A program made the translations under genes and the position numbers. Under the pieces are notes generated by a model. The model saw only the letters and a list, made by a program, of their open reading frames with translations, was not told where the DNA came from and did no database searches. This document shows positions 2,873-58,230 of a stretch of DNA of 64,000 bases, in pieces (position 1 is the first letter of the stretch; every line of letters begins with the position of its first letter). The DNA lies in the NCBI RefSeq assembly GCF_002113885.1, contig NW_018408739.1, positions 109,515 through 173,514 on the forward strand. The letters are read 5' to 3'. The DNA comes from Mizuhopecten yessoensis (lineage: Eukaryota).

Positions 2873-3230
2873 GGAGGCACGGTAGTCTAATGGTAGGGAG
2901 CAGGGCTTGTGACTGAAGGGTTGCGGGTTCGAGTCACGTCATAGCACTGTGTTGTATCTGTAACAGCTAAGGTACATCTGTATATGAGGGGGGAAATATT
3001 GCCTTACTGGCAAGCTAGCTTTCCAGTGATGTGGTATAACCCAGGGACCCAGAAGTTGGATGGGTGACCGCCCGCACATAACATATCTTTGAACAAGATA
3101 CTTTACTCAGCCTGTTCCAGTCTACTCAGCTGTAAATGAGTATGTGGTAGGGCAGTGCTCAAATTGTTGAATGCAGCTAGCTGTGATCTAAGGCCCTATA
3201 ACCACGGATTAAACTTTGTGAACTGCTTTC
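2873..3230 (+). mobile_element. tRNA-derived CORE-like SINE, interrupted by a 125-bp insert
   Basis: A-box ggtagtctaatggtagg and B-box gggttcgagtcac. Body ctttgaacaagatactttactc...ctcagctgtaaatgagt matches the copies at 7132, 37653 and 56622. Confidence 0.8.
2959..3083 (+). mobile_element. Solo-LTR-like insert (TGT...ACA, TSD TATC) containing a 5S rRNA C-box
   Basis: Absent from the other SINE copies. TATC is duplicated at 2955-2958 and 3084-3087. TTGGATGGGTGACCGCC at 3056-3072 matches the 5S rRNA internal-control C-box. Confidence 0.65.
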
Positions 3231-4007
3231 TGTCGTTGGCCAATGAATAGCAATAGTATCCTTGGCTTTGAACTTTGGGCCCTGAAATACAAACTCTTCC
3301 AAGGTATTCTCACATTTAATCTTGTATAAACGCTGCCAAAATTCTGTTCAAACTGAAGTTGGTCGTTAGGGTCATGACATTGAATAGTGATGGGACTGGC
3401 CTGTGACAGGATGGGTCAGGACCGGATTGGGCTGCGAGAGGATTAAACAGGAAAGGACGGGATGGGACGGACATGGGTAACACTATATGCCCCACCCACA
3501 TGAGGGTCATAATTGCACAAGTAATTTATGAAATTGTGAAAAATGGTCATAACCGGTTGAGGTACATTGTACTACCTCTTTCTAATGAAGAAAACAAGGA
3601 CTGTAAAGTATAGGGAGAAGGGAAACAACTCTGCTTCATGAGAAATTGAAGCCTGATTCATCATTTCCATATAAATATAAATCTTTTATCAATAATTAAT
3701 CTTTTTTCACATTTTATGTACATCATGCGATTGTAAAAAAAAATCTGCATTTGAAATATGTAACAATGTGTAATTATCAAATTTAGGGTAATTAAGACAA
3801 TCATTCTATAATATTACCAATAATCTTAAATTGTGTATATTGTAAATAACAACAAACATAAGCTCTGCAAAGTAATAAAAACAAAACCTTCAAGACATCA
3901 CTTCATTTTTTATCACCTGTTGATATATACCGAAATTCTCGGAGAGAGTGATTGTTTTTCAGAAGCTCATACTTGATTTCACACAAGGTGGTCAGTAGGT
4001 GGTCAGT

Positions 4008-6165: not shown

Positions 6166-9100
6166 TCAAACATCGCCATTGACAATTGTACAATTCGGCA
6201 ATTCAGCTTGCAAGAGTTGTTTTTCCGTGTCATCATTGAAATCAAACACCAACACACTCAACCTTTTACAAGCCTTGAGTGACGACAGACCAGAGATGGT
6301 GAGTCTGCTGTTCGATTTGAGATCTAGATATTCCAGCTTTTGTAGCCCGGATGACAAAGTCTCCACGGCAGAATCGTTGAGCAGACTACAGTTCGACATA
6401 TTCAGGTGACGGAGATTTTTGAGATGACGTGATATGTGATGAACGGCAAGTTCAGTGCACTGTGTATAACTCAGTTCAAGCCGTTCTAGCAGGGGTAGGG
6501 ACGTTGCGACATGTTTGATTCCCTTTTCATTCAATCTGTAAAGTCCATTTAATTTTAATGTTTTCATTCTCGTCCAATTTCCAATGTCATGCATGTCAAA
6601 ACTGTCCACCCTGCAGCAACAAGACAGGTCCAAGTCCACAATATTTTTCAGATTGTTTTCGTTTCCCTTTAGCCAGCGTGGTTGCCATGAGCAACCATGT
6701 AGCACCAGTCGAGTGAGGGAGCCTGGTAGGTTGCCAGCAGAGATGTTGTCAGTTTTACACATATGAAGGTGAAGGTCACAAATGTTTGGACATCTCTCTC
6801 CGAGATCCCGTAACATCGCGTCTGACAAAGACGGTTTCTTTTGCTTGCGTCCCCCTTAAATATAAAAAGGTTTTCTATTCAATCCCTATTCATCTGCTAA
6901 ATAACTGAACTTCTCGTTAGTGTAGCGGACGTACAACTCTCAAACAAACAAGCAAGGGTAATATTCAATCTCTATATAGATATAGTTATGAATTTTAATA
7001 TTTATTGAACATTCATTGAATTTTTTTTTTATTAAGCATTACATGATGCTATTATGTATCAAGCATAATGTCTACTGACAGAACTCTAAACAGGATCGCA
7101 AACACAGCAAATCAGGTATGTTATGCAATATGAGGTACGGTAGTCTAGTGGTAGGATGCCGGGCTCGTGACCGAAGGGTTGCGGGTTCGAATCACGTCAC
7201 AGCGCTGTGTTGAATCTTTGAACAAGATACTTTACTCTGCTTGTTCCAGTCTACTCAGCTGTAAATGAGTACGTGGTTGGTAAGTGCTCGAATTGTTGAA
7301 TGCTAGCTGCGAGTGTCAAAATGGCAGCACCTGCTGTATGCTTCCCAAGGAGTTGAAAAAGATATTGGCTGGTTGCAAAGGCCCTATAACCACGGATAAT
7401 AATTTGTGAACCGCTTTGAGACGACCTACAAACTAGTTTGTGATAAAGCGGTATATAAGAACCTCAAATTATTACATATTTTTCCCAATTGTTTATTTGT
7501 AAGCCACAGGCCTCATTCCCAAATCAATAAGAAAAAAGCCCTGCATACAATATTATAACATACATATGTAGCCTAAAATATCATTGTCTTGGCTTTATAT
7601 CAATTATCTCCATTGTGTTGTAAAATCATAATCTAGAAATCTGTGACATATAAAATAAAATAAAGTATAAAGCTAAACTATACTTGTTTCTCTACCCTTC
7701 TTACATAGTCATATATTATAATATTAACAAGCATACTGAGTATTTCTAAAGCAATACATGTCCCCTACCGGCCCCTGCTAGCTATACACTGTAATGATTT
7801 ATAAAAATGGTGCCCTTTGGTGTTAATTTGGGAAAATGAAAATTATACAATCAGCTTGTACCTGAATTTAATGTAATTTTTCTATTCTACATTACCATCA
7901 CTCATATTGTAAAAAATAAATCAGAATAAATGAATTTTCATGTATACTGCATATAACACACACATTTGACACTTTAAGTTCAGTAATGAACCGATTATAT
8001 CGATTATGGAATTAGTTACCAAAATCGGAATCGATCGATGTTCAATTGTTATATCGATCATCAGTCCATAACTGGTTTCAACTAGTCCAGGATTTTGTAT
8101 TAATAGCAACGGTGGCCCACCTCAACTCTACAACCCTGAAACTCAAACGTGTCCGAGATATTATGGTCTTTTGTAATTGTGTGAAGTTTGATCAAAATCC
8201 CTGAAGGAGTGAAGCCGCTAGAGCACTGACAACAATTTTCTAAAAATAGTAACAGTGACCTTGACCAAACAACCCTGAAACTCAAACTTCTCCAAGATAT
8301 TATGGTCCTTTGTAATTGTTTGAAGTTTGAACAAAAACCCTTCAAGGAATGAAGCCGCTAGAGTGCTGACAAGGATTTTCTAAAAATATTAAGGGTGACC
8401 TTCACCTTGACCTAACAACCCTGAAACTCAAACGTGTCTGATATATTATGGTCTTTTGTAATTGTGTGAGGTTTGATCAAAATCCCTTCAAGGAATGAAG
8501 CTGCTAGAGCACTGACAAGGATTTTCTAAAAATAGTAACAGTGACCTTGACCAAACAACCCTGAAACTCAAACTTCTCCAAGATATTATGGTCCTTTGTA
8601 ATTTTGTGAAGTTTGATCAAAAACCCTCCAGGAATGAAGCTGCTAGAACACTGACAAGGATTTTCTAAAAATAGTAACAGTGACCTTGACCAAACAACCC
8701 TGAAACTCAAACTTCTCCAAGATATTATGGTCCTTTGTAATTGTGTGAAGTTTGATCAAAAACCCTTCAAGGAATGAAGCCGCTAGAGCACTGACAAGGA
8801 TTTTCTAAAAATAGTAACGGTGACCTTCACCTTGACCTAACAACCCTGAAACTCAAACTTGTCCGAGATATTATGGTCCTTTGTAATTGTGTGAAGTTTG
8901 ATCAAAAACCCTTCAAGGAATGAAGCCGCTAGAGCACTGACAAGGACTTTCTAAAAATAGTAACGGTGACCTTCACCTTGACCTAACAACCCTGAAACTC
9001 AAACTTGTCCGAGATATTATGGTCCTTTGTAATTTTGTGAAGTTTGATCAAAAACCCTCCAGGAATGCAGCCCCTAGAGTGCTGACAAACATTGGTGTCC

Positions 9101-35200: not shown

Positions 35201-38200
35201 AACATGTGGTTTTATGAACCTAAAAAGGATTTATTAACCGAGACGAAACACAAGTTGTTATCAATATATATTAACTTTCTACAGTAGAAGCTCATTTATA
35301 TGGAAAATCACTTATGTTTCGAGACAAATTTTAAGATTTGTTTAGAACATTTAGAGGAATATCACACTGTATAAACACTCAACTCTAAGTAAGTGTTTTT
35401 TTAATAGCTGCATTACTAAAATGTCTATTTTGAAATTAATTAAGAAAAGCTTATTCATGTTGATACTGGTGTTAATGTTTATGTATTAAGAGAAACGAAT
35501 TCAATTTACTTGTAAACAAACCCATCCTAAATCTAAGAATAATAATATGTCATTTGGACTAGTCTCAGAATCGTTTGGCTGTTACTTCACCTTTCAGCTT
35601 TACCTTCGGATGGAGTAACGAAGTTTGTTAACGTATGCGGCAGGAGTTTCTTTTTCGACTGTTCTGCTGTATGGCAGATTGAAGTAAAGAACTGCGGGGC
35701 CTTCTATGTGTACTATCTACAGCGACCACCTGGGGATTTTGGATATTGCTTTGGTGAGTGGTTCAGTTAATATTCTGGATTCTCAATCAGTATTATAGTT
35801 TATCCAGCTACATGTAAGTAACAATAATAATATCCCTATGTGATTAAATGACCTTTATATGAATTAAGCTAACAAGAAACCATGAATAAAATCATCGTAA
35901 TCACGTTTAATCTTACCATGAATATATTATACATTTTGTCTCATCTAGAATTCATTATGATTACAAATGTACACATTATATCCTACCTTGAATATTATAC
36001 TCTATGTCTTATTTTGAATCAATCATGTTTACACATTATAATAAGCTTACCATGACTATAATATACTTTCTGTCTTATCTTGAATTTATCATGTTTACAC
36101 ACTATATCTTACCATGATTACAGTATGTATACACATTTATCTTATCTTAGATGTATTATTTATAAACGTTATATCTTACTTGGAATACACTTTGTACACA
36201 AATTAAACACAACAAGGAAATTGTATCTATGCATTTAACAATTGTCTGCAAACGAAATACTAAATGTAACTAATCACGCTCCTGTGTTAAATGTTTCCAT
36301 ACACCCATTGATGATAAGGATATGGACCTGCCTCGTCTGTGTATTGATTTCTGAAGCTTCATAAGTATCCTTCCAAATAACGTTTTGTCGCTGATTCCTC
36401 CAGTTGCTCAACCAAGGCATTGTCAAAACATACTATCATTCTTAGTACCATTAAATCTAGGTAAACAATTTCTTCAATAACATTTTTTTTACTTTCTGCC
36501 TCTTTACACCACAGTAACTCATACATCATACTATCATACTAATTTGCATTTCTAGATTTAATTAATTCTGTGATTTTGTAGGCACCGAGATGCAATGCCC
36601 GGATGGAGAAACTTCGGCCACAGGATTTACACCCGGGTGTAAATGTAAGTACAGCATGCCTTACACTGATGACTATATCAACTGATGTTTCGATTTTGTA
36701 TGGTAGTATATGTAACTGTCATTTATGAAATGTATTCCCGTATTTGATGGAAAACTATGTAGAGTTATTGAGTTTGCATTATTACATAATTGTTAAATCG
36801 CACTAAAGTAAAACAGCCAGTATTTATGATATGGAACATAAGGGCCTGTATTCACATGGTGGTGAAACAAGATGTTGTGTTATCGTACTAGACAGTATTT
36901 ATGATATGCAACACAAGGTCCTGTATTTCACACCGTGGTAATACAAGATGTTGTGTTATCCCGATAGACACAAATTCTTTTTGGCTGAAAATCATTGGTT
37001 CTTGCCCACCGATCAAAAAACTGATAGAAGAATGGATTGCTAGCATTTTAGTACTTTGTGATGTTAGTATCCGGTCTCGTGGGCGTTTTGTCTGCTGTTG
37101 ATGTTATGTTTACATTTTCAGTAGATATAAGGAATGTTGATGGAGGTAGTCGGGAATCAGACTTTTCAGAATAAATAGTGTGAATATAAACTACAATGTA
37201 GGCATGTAGTAAAAAGGCAGCTCAATCCAATACATATGTGTTTACAATCTAACGCCTCAAATGGTACTCAGTAACGAATGGATATATCATTCGCTTAAAT
37301 AATAATAATAATAATTCGAGGTTCTTATATACCGCTTTATCACAACTTAGTTCGTAGGTCGTCTCAAAGCGGTTCACAAATTATTATCCATGGTTATAGG
37401 GCCTTTGCAACCAGCCAATATTGTTCTCAACCTCCTTTGGGAGCATACAGCCGGTGCTTCTATTTCGGCGTTCACAGCTAGCATTCTACAATTCTAGCAC
37501 TGCGTAACCACGCACTCATTTATGGCTGAGTAGGCTGGAACAAGCGGAGTAAAGTATCTTGCTCAAAGGTGCAACACAGTGCCGTGCCGTGACTCGAACC
37601 CGCCACCCTTTGGTCACGAGCCCGTCGTCCTACCACTAGACCACCGTGCCTCCGTAACATCCTCGTAACATTTCTCCATACGCACGATGCACCCGACCAA
37701 TCTGAGACATCAGCTCACATCTAATACTCCCTACGAATTTGCCATTGTTTATTAGATAGATAATTCGTAATTTGGCATTCGACAGAAATACCTTCTACAA
37801 TAGAAAACGTGAACTGCAATAGAACATTCTCTTGAGGCATGATAAAAAAGAATCATTACAGACTAAGTTAAATGCTAAAGACTTAAAGACAAGAGACAAC
37901 AAAGAAAAAAATAGAAAGTAAGAGTAGAAAGGTATACCTATTTTTTGTTCTACAATGAAGGTCCTGATGAATTTGTAAAGTATTTTTTTTTTTTCGATTT
38001 TTCTTTTTAAATGTGTTTATGTTTACATAATTCTGCTCATATTTTAATCCTTCATCACATGAAATCCTAATTATAGATGTTGTCTATTTCAGATGCCTTA
38101 GATACGACTTTTACTGTATCTGTCAATACTGGGTTAGATGAAAGGATTGGTAAACCTCCAGGCATACCCGAAGTAATACCACAAGATTTCAAAATCCACG

Positions 38201-41200: not shown

Positions 41201-44200
41201 TTTATTTTCTAGGTCACTGTTGAAGACTTGGATAAAACCGTTCTATCCGGTGAATGTTACAGTAGGAACGACCCACATATGAGAACATTTGACGGAAGGT
41301 ACATTTTATTAGAGCGTACGGTAAAATGTCAATTTCGGTTTTAGTTGTAATTCGCTTGAATGGATGAAAACGAATGCAATATGATGGTTTAAGCAGAAGT
41401 TATAAAGGGCTTCACCATAAAGTCAAGATATTTGTATTTCGTTAAAACTTTTGGACAATCTAATTTCCAAACTTTTTTATTCGCTTTTTAATTTCTTTTG
41501 CTGATTTATCAAAGCAAACAAAATATATTGAATACATTGATTTCTTTGTTAATTCCACAACGTTTTATGTAACATCATGTCTTTAAACGTTCATATAATC
41601 AAAAAGACATTTCATTTGTTAAGATAAATGATATTAACATCTCCTATGGCTGCGGTTTCGAGTATAATCTATAAAAGCTTTTATTTTTTGCAGGTCCTGG
41701 GAAAACCAAAGAATTGGAGAATTCGTGTTGTATAAACACAATGAAAAACCATATTGGGTGAGACTAATTAAAAAATAATAAAATTTGCTTTTTTGTATTC
41801 TAGCACTATAAGAACATATACATGCTTTTTGTTGATTTTACACGTAGACACTTACATTACATCGTTAGAGACAATATAATATGCTATTTAATCAATTATT
41901 GTTAATTAAGTAATGCTGTTAATTCAGAGAGTTTTGATTTCGTTGGTTACACGATCCCTTCGTATACGTAAAATACATTTGTAGATATACTGTATACCGG
42001 ACAAATATTCGTCCTTTGCCAATAAAGATATTTCAACATCGGGAAAAGCGGATCAACGGAACATTTCTAGCTTAGCAATATCCGTTTCTTTATAAATATG
42101 AGTTTTATAAAAACAGTTGTTGGGATATAGCGTTATATTTTAAGTAAACGACTGCACTCTTCCCTTGCCGGTCCTATTTCTAAAAACCAACGGATGTTGT
42201 TTGTTCCATGTACACTACATGAAATAAATATTATAGTGTATGCTGTATAAAACAAATGCTGTCTGTGTATTTTGATTCCTCCGTCTTTTCGTATTGCAGA
42301 GTTATCTGCTCCTGTTAGCAGGTATGGATTGTTACGTCATTTGTTTGTGAGAGTAACATCATCAATTTTTGAGATAACCACGTAATTTTCTCACACAAAC
42401 CAATGACGTAACAATCAGTACCTGCTCACAAGAGAAGATAATTTTGCAATACGCAAAGATGGATACGTATGATAAGTCATCATTGGTCAACGATGCGGTC
42501 ATTGAAATTCTGCCTTCGGTTTACGCTAGTCGAGGGGCTTATTGTTTTCAAATATAAGCTATATCCTATTATATTTCTTTATATATAATGTAGTTGGGTT
42601 TTTTTGTGTTTTTTTCTGTGTCTCTATAAAGGAGCGGATTGCTCCAGAAATTTGACAACATCCTATTATCTAAAATGTTAGAAATGCTTCCTTGCCCCAT
42701 AAAATCATTCTAATTCTAAGTTATTTGTATACTATAAACATACATTTCCAGTGTTATGTGAGAAGTTACCATTGATGTTACTGCTTTCACCCGTACACAA
42801 GATCAGTCAGATATTATTCCTTAGCATTCGTTTTCAGGTTCACGCAGTCTACCAGCCTTGCAGCGCTCACGTTCCGAACGGAGTCACGTGCAACTGTGGA
42901 GTAGCAATTCGAAACAACGACGCACTTTTTGTAGCCAACTTTTGTAGAGAGAAAATTGGATGGAGTGTTAGCGGGGTAACAAACTCCAACAGATACATAG
43001 AGAAGTCGTTCTGTGACGACACATCTATGACAATTCAAGAAAACGGAAACACTTATACGGTAATTAAATAGTTTAAGTATCAGAGGTGAGTATAGTGGTG
43101 GTGGCAGAGGAACTGGTAATAGTAGTGTTAACGGCACAACTGTTGATGATGCTGGAGGCGGTTGCAGAGGCAGCAGCAGCTCTACAAATGAGGTTTATGG
43201 AATTTTTGTCATATTCCGATTGATAGTCATGATGACAATGCCTAAATAAACCTTACTCTTTTATATCTCTTTTCGTTTTGTTACGTGCAGTCCGAAATTA
43301 GTTATAAAGTATATTGTCTTATTTTATTCTTTTTCAATGTGGAAATAGTAATCAATTGTGTATGACAATAATGCTTCAGATTACAGAAAATCATCGTGAA
43401 CCAATCTTAAATAGGATAGAATGAGGATAGATAAAATATAGCCGAAGCCGTCCTTTTCATTAGTGTAACAATGTAATAATATATAGCGGAACTTGGCAGG
43501 GTCGATCGCCGGCCACACGGTAGTTCATTTGGTTAGAGCGCCCGGCAAAAGTTCAGAGAATCCCTGGGTCGAATCCCGGTGTGGCAGTGTATTTCGCCTT
43601 TTCTGTTACATTTGGTACCCAGCGAGATATACACACGGAAGTTGGTATAGGGTCTCGTGTGTCTTTGGGACGACGGCTTCGTTGAAGAATGGAGGAATGT
43701 TACGGAAATGTACTGGGTCGATCGCCTGTAACTGGTTAACTCTGTTGGTTAGAGCGTCCGTCTAAAGTTTCGAGAGTTCCGGGTTCGAACCCCGGTCTTG
43801 CCGTGCAATTCTCTCCTGTTACCTAAATATATCAATGTATATACGACAAACGTTCATCTCATTCATGTGTTGAGATGTAATTTCGATTGTTACAGGTTAC
43901 ACTACCCACTGGAACTAAGATAACATTTAATTACTACTATCGCTATGGAATAGGCTCCATCATAGTCAAGCCATCTCTTGCTGACTGGAAAAGCTCATCC
44001 GGACTGTGTGGTTATATGGACGGGACCTATGACAAAGAGTTCAAACTGCAGAGCGGGAAGGAGACGGCGGATATAAGGGAATTCGCACTGGACTGGAAGT
44101 TAGTGAAGTATTTTGTTACGAAAGAGCGTTATTCAAATAGTTAGATTTAAACGATTATTCACAAAACTGTACACAGCTTACTATTATGGTGAAAAATTGA

Positions 44201-55117: not shown

Positions 55118-56621
55118 GTGTATGTATTATATCTTTTTTGTTCAAATATGTACATTGCATGTTTATTTGTGTTTATCTAACAGGATTGTTTTAGTACTTC
55201 ACCTTTACAAAGGCTTTGCATGTGTTGTTGTTTAAAAACGTGTTTATCATAGCAAATGCCATATTGGAAATTTGTGTTTGATTCCGAGAGCTTGTTTCCT
55301 GCATGAAAGACTAGCAGGTAGTTAAGTTGTATATCTATTTACTAGAAACCAAACTAGGAACTTCTTTTTCTAGAGAAAAAAAAAGATCATTATAACAAAT
55401 TGACGATTCATAACACTGGGGCATTTTACTACAAATATAGAGCAAAAAAGAATTTAGGAACGATTTAAACAGAGACCCATGGAAAAGAACAAGACAAAGA
55501 CAGCTATATACCTTGATACTGTGCGAAGTGATATGGTTCAGACCACACCTGTCACAAAATAAACTTTAAATCTGGAATGGTGACACCCGCCTGAAAAAAA
55601 CCTGTATCCGCCCCTGATCATAAACAATGTTCTCAATGGAGTAAACACATGTCTTACTTACATGTTACTTACATGTTCTTAGGAAATAAAAAGATATGTT
55701 TCTAAACAGTTTTACTTAGTAAGCTATGTTATTTATTCAAATTATAGATTATTTCAATCAAATAATGACTATTTCATTGATACATCTGGGAAATGTCTTG
55801 GCTAACTTACACAAGGAACTGGACTTATGTTTGTATTCACACAGAGCTCCAAATATATGCTTGCAATATTAACTCCGTCTTTTATTTGTCCTAATTGTTA
55901 AAAAATACTTACATACTTAAACGATTGTTAAAGAGGACCGTTAAGGATTGATTTAAATTACAGTATCAGTCAGGCAGGTATACTGTTCTTTCTGTACTCT
56001 TTTAAATTGGTTACGGTGCTGCTTTTTTTTTACAGTTCGGCCTCCAACGGTAACGGGAAAAGGGAGTAACGCTTGATTGTGTAGGTTGATATCCCTAAGA
56101 AGGGTTTTTACTCATTCAACAAAACAGCATTTGTTTCCTTAACGATGTCGTATTAAAGGCTGTCCAGAATTTCTATATGTTTCTGAATGTGCAAGATGTT
56201 AAATAACGAGTATTTTATATAACATATTTATTGAATCGACATAATGGTCGTATTGCGCAGTAAAATGTTTACATTTGTTTACTCTGCTGGTGAAGTATCA
56301 TGCAGTCTCCGATATTTGCTCTAAGTTTGTAGCTGGACACTTGTAAAACTGCCATGGTTTACAAGAAAAAGTTATCACCCTAGTAACCGAAAAAAATAAA
56401 ATGTAAAAGTGTTTTATTGGTACACGTATTTCTTTTGTTGTATTTCTATATACTTTAGACCTCATAACACTTTAGAATTTGAATTTCATTTCTTGGACCT
56501 GTAGTTACACTGATGAGGTTTAAAATGGACGGAATTGTCATATGGTGCTGTAACGTAGTTACTTTGTTTGACCTTCTGCATTGAAAAACGTAATCTATAA
56601 ATAGAAGCTTATTGTATAAAT

Positions 56622-58230
56622 GGAGGCATGGTAGTCTAGTGGTAGGACACCTGGTTCATGATCGAATGGTTGCAGGTTCGAGTCACAGCACGGCACTGTG
56701 TTTGTCTTTGAGAAAGAGACTTTACTCTGCTTGTTCCAGTCAACTCAGCAATGCCATATTGAATATATTGTTAAAAGTGCATCTGCTAAATTGAATTTAC
56801 TCAGGAAATGAAAGTATACTGTCGATCGCCAAACATTATAACGTATGCATTTTACCTTTATAAGACCGATATTAGAGTATGGAGATATTGTTTGGGACAA
56901 TTTGACCAACCTACAATCACAAAAGATAGAAAATATACAACTTGAAGCTGCACGCATCATTACGGAAGGCACCAAGCTCACTAGTCATGCAAACCTTTAA
57001 ATGAAACAGGATGGTAAACACTTTCTAGTAGGCGGAAACACCACAAAATGATACAATTCCACAAAATAGTACACAACATTACCCCACAATATCTTAGAAA
57101 CATTCTCACAGAACGACATTCGCACATCCACCAACATAACACTAGAGACGCAAATAAATTTAGACCTGTACGTTGTAGAACAAACTTATTTCAAAAATCT
57201 TTCCTATCTGCTTCTGTCAATCCTTGGAATGACGCATCCGTAAAAAGAATCATATAACTTCTGCGGTATTAGAATAGGCCAAATATACCATGCTAGGCTC
57301 AGAATGAAATGAATTTCACTAAACGGCCATCTTTTTCATAAAAATCTAATAGGAAGTCCACTCTGTTCCTGCCGTGAGGCAAACGAAACAAACGATCATT
57401 ATCTATTATCTTGTCGGAACTATGAACACATTAGACAAATATGTTTCAGGCCAATACAAAATTATACCTCAGTAGAAACCTTCCTGTTTGATGACAACAA
57501 TCTTTCACCTGCCCGAAATAGATATTTATTTAACTGTGAACAAATTTTTATTATTAAATCAAAACGTTTTTTACCTATTTAATTCATAAACCCAATTATT
57601 CACTCATATAAACCTCGGTATTGTGTGAGCGTGTTTGAGTGGGTGTGTGGTAGTGCGTGCGTGTGGAGATTTTCTTATGTTAGTTGTGCCATATGCTATT
57701 GTTTTTTTTTTGTAGCATCTTTGTAGTAGTACACAGCATATATTTTCCACTGTTATATATCCGTTATGACATCAGTGACATTTACATAGGTTAACGTTTT
57801 GTACATTGACAAATGCTATTCTTGCTTCTCTTCCTATTTCTACTCCTCTTTCTTCTACTTCAAGTCTCTGTTATCCATTATTATTTCTGCTAAGGAAACA
57901 GATTGATATAAGTTTAATAACTCGGTTCTGGATCCTATTTCATGTATGTAATTATTAAGTGGTCAGTATATTTTAATTGCAAATTTACGAAAAAAATATG
58001 GTTTATACTAACTCAGCTGTGAATGAGTACGTGGTTGGACAGCGCTCGAATTGTTGAATGCTAGCTGAGCGCCGAAATGGAAGCATCGGCTGTATGCTCC
58101 CCAGGGAGTTAAGAAATGTATTGGCTGGTTGCAAAGGCCTATAACCAAGGATACTAATTTGTGAACCGCTGAGAGACGACCTTCAACCTAGGTTGTGACG
58201 AAGCGGTTTATAATAACCTCGAATTATTAT
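56622..58230 (+). mobile_element. CORE-like SINE split by a LINE insertion (5' part 56622-56749, 3' part 58010-58230)
   Basis: The two halves rejoin to the same consensus as 7132-7474. Confidence 0.85.
56750..58009 (+). mobile_element. 5'-truncated, decayed CR1/L2-clade LINE (end of ORF2 plus 3' UTR), 8-bp TSD
   Basis: Broken translation FIRPILEYGDIVWDN...IENIQLEAARIITEG...ETGW.TLSSRRKHHKMIQFHKIVH...CRTNLFQKSF...CSC.....HYLLSC, typical of post-RT LINE ORF2. TSD AACTCAGC at 56742-56749 and 58010-58017. Confidence 0.85.

Follow-up and report, generated by a model that had tools for sequence, protein, structure and literature searches.

A decayed solo LTR in a scallop SINE-like repeat and the 5S-bearing TRIM family from which it very probably derives

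The interrupted repeat and its insert

The DNA analysed here, referred to as the window, is a 64,000-nt stretch from the scallop Mizuhopecten yessoensis. An interspersed, SINE-like repeat in the window is split by a 125-bp insert, and the features of this locus are listed in Table 1. When the window was searched with the host sequence, further copies of the host repeat were found at 7110-7430 (+), 37350-37670 (-) and 56605-56900 (+), and no match to it was seen at 43482-43823. An additional host-repeat copy lies at 58011-58066; host-repeat copies are 80 to 88% identical. ARAGORN called no tRNA in the window.

Table 1. Features of the insert and its surroundings (positions in the window).
Position	Strand	Feature	Basis
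2873-2958	+	Host interspersed repeat, 5' part; tRNA-like head, SINE-like	Host-repeat search and alignment
2955-2958	+	Left copy of the target site duplication (TSD), TATC	Window letters; a single 4-base stretch in three empty host copies
2959-3083	+	Solo LTR assigned to the 5S-bearing TRIM family, 125 bp; starts with TGTAACAGC, final letters CATAACA	
2972-2979	+	Eight extra bases, GTACATCT, private to the window copy; placement ambiguous by a few bases	Alignment to the nearest complete LTRs (L030, L003)
3011-3013	+	TTT in place of the only T4 run of the element (T4 in 51/55 family LTRs); one T lost	
3049-3050	+	Junction of a 31-bp deletion private to the window copy; the lost part includes 5S box A and IE elsewhere	
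3050-3072	+	Surviving 5S-derived segment, about 5S positions 72-95; box C-like TGGATGGGTGACC at 3057-3069	
3084-3087	+	Right TSD copy, TATC	Window letters; empty-site alignment
3084-3240 (end approximate)	+	Host repeat, 3' part; runs on directly across the empty site in other copies	

The target site was reconstructed by aligning the filled site with three empty host copies. All three (3/3) show TGTT(G), four bases ending in C and CTTTGA, and in the same alignment the filled site reads TGTTG-TATC-(125 bp)-TATC-TTTGA. The extra DNA therefore amounts to exactly 125 bp plus one 4-bp duplication. A preliminary description of this DNA had proposed a 125-bp insert with TGT...ACA ends and a TATC/TATC TSD that is missing from three other host copies, and both the window letters and the empty-site alignment confirm it. 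The alternative reading of a 5-bp TSD (TATCT) was rejected because the family to which the insert is assigned (below) begins with TGTAAC and because only four bases are duplicated relative to the empty sites.

Contigs from four public sequencing runs (four studies) span both junctions of the insert with zero to one difference, so the filled state is common in the species. The sequencing runs with the insert comprise 19 holders, all of them contigs, for which RNA or DNA is not stated. Apparent 129-bp skips across the insert were considered as a possible empty allele and this was rejected: the two sides of the skips are at most 39 nt long and lie inside the repeat, and the skips thus derive from paralogous repeat copies.

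A family of miniature LTR elements

The assembly from which the window was taken (987.6 Mb in 82,659 contigs) was searched for relatives of the insert, and all family comparisons were made on natural copies, copy by copy. At least 303 first-look candidate matches to the 125-bp unit were found. A 30-mer of the LTR gave 283 matches with up to three mismatches, and a 23-mer covering the LTR end and PBS gave 213 under the same threshold; the reversed control of each gave 0. The counts suggest a copy number of a few hundred. In most copies the match to insert positions 1-92 is followed by about 31 additional bases, after which positions 92-125 match.

A full copy opens with an LTR, about 147 bp long, that starts with TGTAACAG and closes with GTTACA or a near variant; TT, the PBS, an internal region of about 138 bp, the PPT GGAGGGGGGAATAG and a second LTR follow. 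One locus (L029) is a complete miniature LTR element of this kind, with LTR, TT, PBS TGGTGGCAGCGGTGGGAT, about 115 bases, GGAGGGGGGAATAG and the second LTR. Among 60 fetched loci we found 26 LTR-internal-LTR units, together with solo LTRs, one LTR-LTR pair and tandem LTR-internal-LTR-internal-LTR arrays. The whole element measures about 430 to 440 bp and has no coding capacity. [quoted passage not shown] A pattern search located the ATCCCACCGCTGCCA 3' end at 25 exact places in the genome, and at each of the six that were fetched (6/6) ARAGORN called a tRNA-Leu(AAG) or tRNA-Leu(TAG). Nearly all of the 26 pairs have the PPT GGAGGGGGGAATAG or a near variant directly next to the 3' LTR. The family thus shows the attributes of a TRIM, namely paired LTRs in the 100-250 bp range, a short non-coding internal domain, a total below 1 kb, PBS, PPT, TG...CA ends and a TSD of fixed length. 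The TG...CA boundaries of the insert recur in many other copies, and the paired-LTR copies with canonical PBS and PPT that a solo-LTR reading calls for do exist.

TSD length was examined at 22 further elements, solo or full, in which both ends could be placed by means of TGTAACAG and GTTACA. An exact 4-bp TSD is present at 11 of the 22, and six more agree in three of the four bases; no match was obtained when the 3' flank was slid by 1 to 7 bases as a control. The fifth base agrees in five (left side) and four (right side) of the 11 exact cases. This is the chance level for AT-rich DNA, which argues against a 5-bp TSD. With the window copy and L012 (CTTG) included, the exact 4-bp cases number 13. 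The consistent 4-bp length predicted for the family is borne out by the 11/22 exact cases against 0 in the slid controls.

LTR pairs (n = 26) are 74 to 92% identical with a median of 86%, and those of four further elements of diverged subfamilies are 80 to 86% identical. No young copy with near-identical LTRs was present among the sampled elements, and for that reason the sampled family looks long inactive. As sampled, the family looks old and free of recent insertions. All parts of the LTR are about equally conserved apart from dips at CpG sites, and the boxes described below do not stand out; this is the expectation for neutral decay after a burst.

Several loci depart from the standard layout. 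Seven of them (L006, L022, L028, L050, L051, L060 and L061) form a subfamily with a PBS that diverges after about 12 to 13 nt (TGGTGGCAGCGTAGTGACTCTGTGAT). Loci L074-L079 belong to subfamilies that keep the exact PBS junction and have LTRs just 67 to 85% like the LTR of L029. Arrays of the type LTR-internal-LTR-internal-LTR, with three LTRs each, are found at L038:1296-2059 (G000 C76668) and L016:1084-1586 (G000 C3955), and in the L016 array the internal parts are shortened. At L023:1588-3072 (G000 C5018) a 50-bp tandem repeat of at least 28 units is 90 to 98% like internal-region positions ~50-100 and adjoins a family LTR. It is by this resemblance and position a minisatellite grown from the internal domain of the TRIM.

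The window contains no part of the family internal region over its whole length, and the insert is therefore a solo LTR. We are confident that window positions 2959-3083 represent a decayed solo LTR of a non-autonomous 5S-bearing TRIM inserted in a SINE-like repeat. That the insert is a solo LTR of such a family had been suggested in the preliminary description, and the paired copies, PBS, PPT, 4-bp TSDs and the 5S stretch (next section) sustain it. A TRIM of about 430 to 440 bp would have entered the SINE-like repeat and duplicated TATC, and would then have been reduced to a single LTR by LTR-LTR recombination.

A reading of the insert as a 5S pseudogene fragment or a SINE3 (5S-derived SINE), with no LTR, was also weighed. 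It would account for the 5S box C-like stretch in the insert, and further 5S-like fragments do occur in the genome. The family, on the other hand, carries only about 5S positions 50-95. Its copies have fixed TGTAAC...GTTACA ends, the direct repeats flank a tRNA-Leu PBS and a PPT, and the elements are bordered by 4-bp TSDs without an A-rich or LINE-like tail. A SINE3 or 5S pseudogene is rejected on the paired LTRs, PBS, PPT and 4-bp TSDs, and we regard its probability as negligible.

All cis-acting parts for LTR-type reverse transcription and integration are present in the family: PBS, PPT, TG/CA inverted ends and TSD. A TRIM without genes must have used the enzymes of an autonomous LTR element, and the family would thus have been mobilised in trans by the reverse transcriptase and integrase of such a partner. 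The putative partner would make 4-bp TSDs and be primed by tRNA-Leu, and by analogy it is probably Ty3/Gypsy-like. The animal Helenus elements, which have a 4-bp TSD, were linked to Gypsy elements by Kojima (PMC10886601). A search for the autonomous partner did not find it: the six additional loci that have the exact LTR-end/PBS junction turned out to be TRIM copies, all from subfamilies that have diverged further.

The 5S-derived stretch and the state of the window copy

Reference 5S sequences were taken from the same genome: the complete gene L031 and the truncated 5S-like copies L032 and L034. Local alignment of 55 near-complete LTRs placed about 5S positions 50-95 (box A, IE and box C) on about LTR positions 92-137, in a collinear and mostly ungapped fashion. 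The 5S alignment scores above every reversed-5S or reverse-complement-LTR control in 44 to 51 of the 55 LTRs. In 42 of 50 LTRs a 12-mer like box A and a 13-mer like box C are separated by exactly 18 nt; an 18-nt spacing between box A and box C has been stated for Cassandra and 5S genes (PMC7215508). Aligning the family LTR to 5S rRNA (A box, IE, C box), as the preliminary description had suggested, thus yields a collinear stretch. No 5S likeness was detected upstream of box A, where LTR positions 30-91 were compared with 5S positions 1-49 (z near 0). Since the likeness is limited to about 5S 50-95, the LTR carries the internal control region only. Judged by sequence, the 3' third of each LTR is derived from the 5S internal control region and keeps the 5S spacing. 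The Rfam 5S model gave no match in the window, nor in the insert region, eight family loci or one full copy at E values up to 10. The 5S likeness is a 46-nt stretch of sequence and not a folded 5S.

The complete set of box A, IE and box C, which characterizes 5S-type TRIMp3 elements, is found in the family and is lacking in the window copy. Compared with the 55 complete LTRs, the window copy has a median identity of 88% over aligned bases and measures 125 bp against about 147 bp. In 40 of the 55 pairwise alignments the longest gap measures exactly 31 bp, and paralogous contigs have 32 extra letters at the 3049-3050 junction. What survives is the box C side. AGAAGTTGGATGGGTGACCGCC (window 3051-3072) aligns around box C of a 5S gene of the same genome, and within the window TTGGATGGGTGACCGCC aligns with positions 78-95 of that gene. 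The C-box likeness first noted in the insert therefore holds when it is aligned to a 5S gene of its own genome. A box A-like motif was looked for in the window copy and none was found; box C alone remains. TAACCCAGGG (3037-3046) had been read as an A box at shortened spacing. It is part of the ordinary conserved LTR that precedes the 5S-derived stretch, and thus no A box. Nor can the insert be called "5S-promoter-bearing" as it had been, because the 31-bp deletion took box A and IE. With box A and IE lost, the window copy is very probably transcriptionally dead. After its reduction to a solo LTR, the copy would have decayed by the 31-bp deletion, the 8 extra bases and about 12% substitutions. 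The window locus is an ordinary decayed solo LTR.

The element has a single T4 run, at LTR positions ~53-56 (51/55 LTRs); the internal region of 34 copies has no such run (0/34). Box A follows the run after about 36 nt, and a 5S-type start, expected near LTR position 42, would precede it by about 10 nt. By analogy with Cassandra and Ajax we lean towards Pol III as the polymerase that read the family. For Cassandra, Pol III transcription has been validated, and for Ajax it has been proposed (PMC10886601). The 5S part would have recruited TFIIIA, TFIIIC and Pol III, allowing transcription without a Pol II promoter. If so, Pol III would have to pass the T4 run of the 5' LTR and stop at that of the 3' LTR, giving a very short R region of about 12 to 15 nt.

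The same TRIM structure could also carry the 5S stretch as a mere passenger, a 5S-derived SINE or 5S fragment that once landed in the LTR, with the element transcribed by Pol II from the LTR. The uniform conservation of the LTR, in which the boxes are not favoured, is consistent with such a passenger, as are the conserved T4 run inside the predicted Pol III transcript and the failure of the Rfam 5S model to match the LTRs. On the other side, what the LTR has retained coincides exactly with the internal control region and shows no gaps, and 42 of 50 LTRs preserve the 18-nt spacing of box A and box C. Ajax has likewise been described as carrying the promoter part alone (PMC10886601), the 34 internal regions are free of T4, and an element of about 435 bp falls in the size range considered for Pol III in PMC10886601. 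We consider the passenger explanation doubtful and continue to prefer a Pol III promoter.

The genome search for a complete 5S gene returned one, L031 (G000 C66098, a 629-bp contig; 110.8 bits), plus truncated copies. The true 5S array may be missing from the assembly or collapsed in it. The box C of L031 (GGATCGGAGACGGCC) is unlike that of the other 5S-like copies and of the TRIM LTRs. L032:1100-2100 and L033 (G000 C5589 and C2985) are repeats that are 97% identical over at least 1 kb, each with a 96-nt truncated 5S-like gene (5S 1-67, followed by unrelated sequence) that scores above the Rfam cut-off. A metagenome scan with a 20-mer from the box C/LTR tail found a single contig, L073 (Ga0056132_1106471). 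At L073:990-1060 (-) it has the 5S-like stretch GGTTAGTACTTGGATGGGTGACCGCCCGCA followed by unrelated sequence, without TRIM structure. This stretch may be a 5S-derived SINE of another organism.

Relation to known families

In the literature consulted, 5S-bearing TRIMs have been reported only from plants and two nemerteans, and the TRIMs reported from bivalves are Helenus and biv-TRIM only (PMC10886601, PMC6934838). A literature search turned up no 5S-bearing TRIM described from molluscs. The proposal that the insert belongs to a possibly undescribed bivalve 5S TRIM family with 4-bp TSDs is supported, as that literature gives only plants and two nemerteans. The significance rests with the family; the copy in the window is a decayed, probably fixed solo LTR without box A. 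The family LTRs are a source of 5S-like matches, of tandem LTR-internal arrays and of satellites in mollusc assemblies.

Plant Cassandra shares with the scallop family a 5S-derived promoter in each LTR (putative in the scallop), boxes A and C 18 nt apart and the non-autonomous state. Tandem LTR-internal arrays are also common to both (for Cassandra, PMC7215508). Cassandra differs in having a near-complete 5S domain with terminators, the PBS TGGTATCAGAGC, a length of 565 to 860 bp and a distribution limited to plants (PMC7215508), whereas the scallop family has only about 5S 50-95 and a tRNA-Leu primer. The Cassandra box consensus, which is a plant consensus, fits 4 of 55 LTRs. Membership in Cassandra was rejected on three grounds: there is no Rfam 5S match, there is no likeness to 5S 1-49, and the PBS is that for tRNA-Leu.

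Bivalve Helenus elements occur in Pteriomorphia including Pectinidae, and like the scallop family they are TRIMs with a 4-bp TSD and a small-RNA gene promoter (putative in the scallop) in the LTR (PMC10886601). Their promoter is tRNA-derived (type 2) in contrast to the putative 5S promoter (type 1), and their primers are Lys, His, Ile, Pro, Glu and Ser, not Leu (PMC10886601). The biv-TRIM elements (Satovic et al. 2019) are also bivalve TRIMs with some tandem arrangements (PMC6934838), but they have no canonical PBS and no reported 5S part (PMC6934838). The internal region of L029 was read and does not contain their conserved inner motif TGATCCCAAAGGAC. Membership in biv-TRIM was rejected, as the scallop family has a canonical PBS and the L029 internal region lacks TGATCCCAAAGGAC. 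SINE3 elements resemble the family in being short, non-autonomous retroelements with a 5S internal promoter (putative in the scallop), and they have been proposed as the source of the 5S part in TRIMp3 elements. They differ in that they lack LTRs, PBS and PPT and are mobilised by LINEs.

The closest published kin is Ajax, where likeness outside the 5S part was judged by eye from printed sequences. Ajax (Ajax-1_NGe and Ajax-1_LiLo) is a TRIMp3 with a 5-bp TSD that is described from two nemerteans only and said to have arisen there (PMC10886601). In both Ajax and the scallop family just the 5S promoter part (box A, IE and box C) is present; it sits in the 3' part of the LTR and there is no 5S-like fold. 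Both have an LTR of about 150 bp, an internal region of 110 to 140 bp, a total length of about 420 to 440 bp, a tRNA-Leu PBS, a G-rich PPT ending in AAT(A/G)(G/A) and hundreds to about a thousand LTR copies. The scallop family differs from Ajax in its bivalve mollusc host (nemertean in Ajax), in its TSD of 4 bp instead of 5 bp, and in its PBS match of 18 nt including CCA, where a 6-nt match was highlighted for Ajax (PMC10886601, Fig. S3). Set against the features of Ajax, the tRNA-Leu primer is present and the 5-bp TSD is not.

How the two families are related can be read in two ways. The scallop family may be a separate capture of a 5S promoter in another lineage, convergent with nemertean Ajax, and we hold this to be about evenly balanced. 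The TSD of 4 bp against 5 bp in Ajax (PMC10886601, Table S2) points this way, since unequal TSD lengths imply that the integrase partners differ. The two hosts are from separate phyla, and a repeated origin of such TRIMs through SINE insertion into LTRs has been argued by Kojima (PMC10886601). Against convergence stand a number of likenesses, all of them judged by eye only. The LTR of about 147 bp compares with 154 and 163 bp in Ajax and the internal region of about 138 bp with 113 and 108 bp. The 5S part is placed alike and has the same end point just after GACCGNC, the PPT GGAGGGGGGAATAG resembles GAAGGGGGGAATGA of Ajax, a tRNA-Leu primer is used in both, and patches of likeness occur upstream (ATGAGGG..., CCAGTG).

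Rather unlikely in our judgement is a single lineage for the scallop family and Ajax, which would either predate the split of molluscs and nemerteans or have moved between them. The tRNA-Leu primer and PPT would then have been kept while the partner was switched from a maker of 5-bp TSDs to one of 4-bp TSDs. If true, a single lineage would overturn the published origin of Ajax within nemerteans, and the element would rank as the most ancient Pol III-type LTR element known from animals, or as one that moves horizontally. The family offers a test of repeated capture against an old shared lineage, and also of partner switching between 4-bp and 5-bp integrases. It was concluded that the scallop family is a 5S-type TRIMp3 in a new phylum with a TSD length unlike that of Ajax, and that the 5S TRIMp3 design seen in plants and two ribbon worms is extended by this bivalve family to a third major group.
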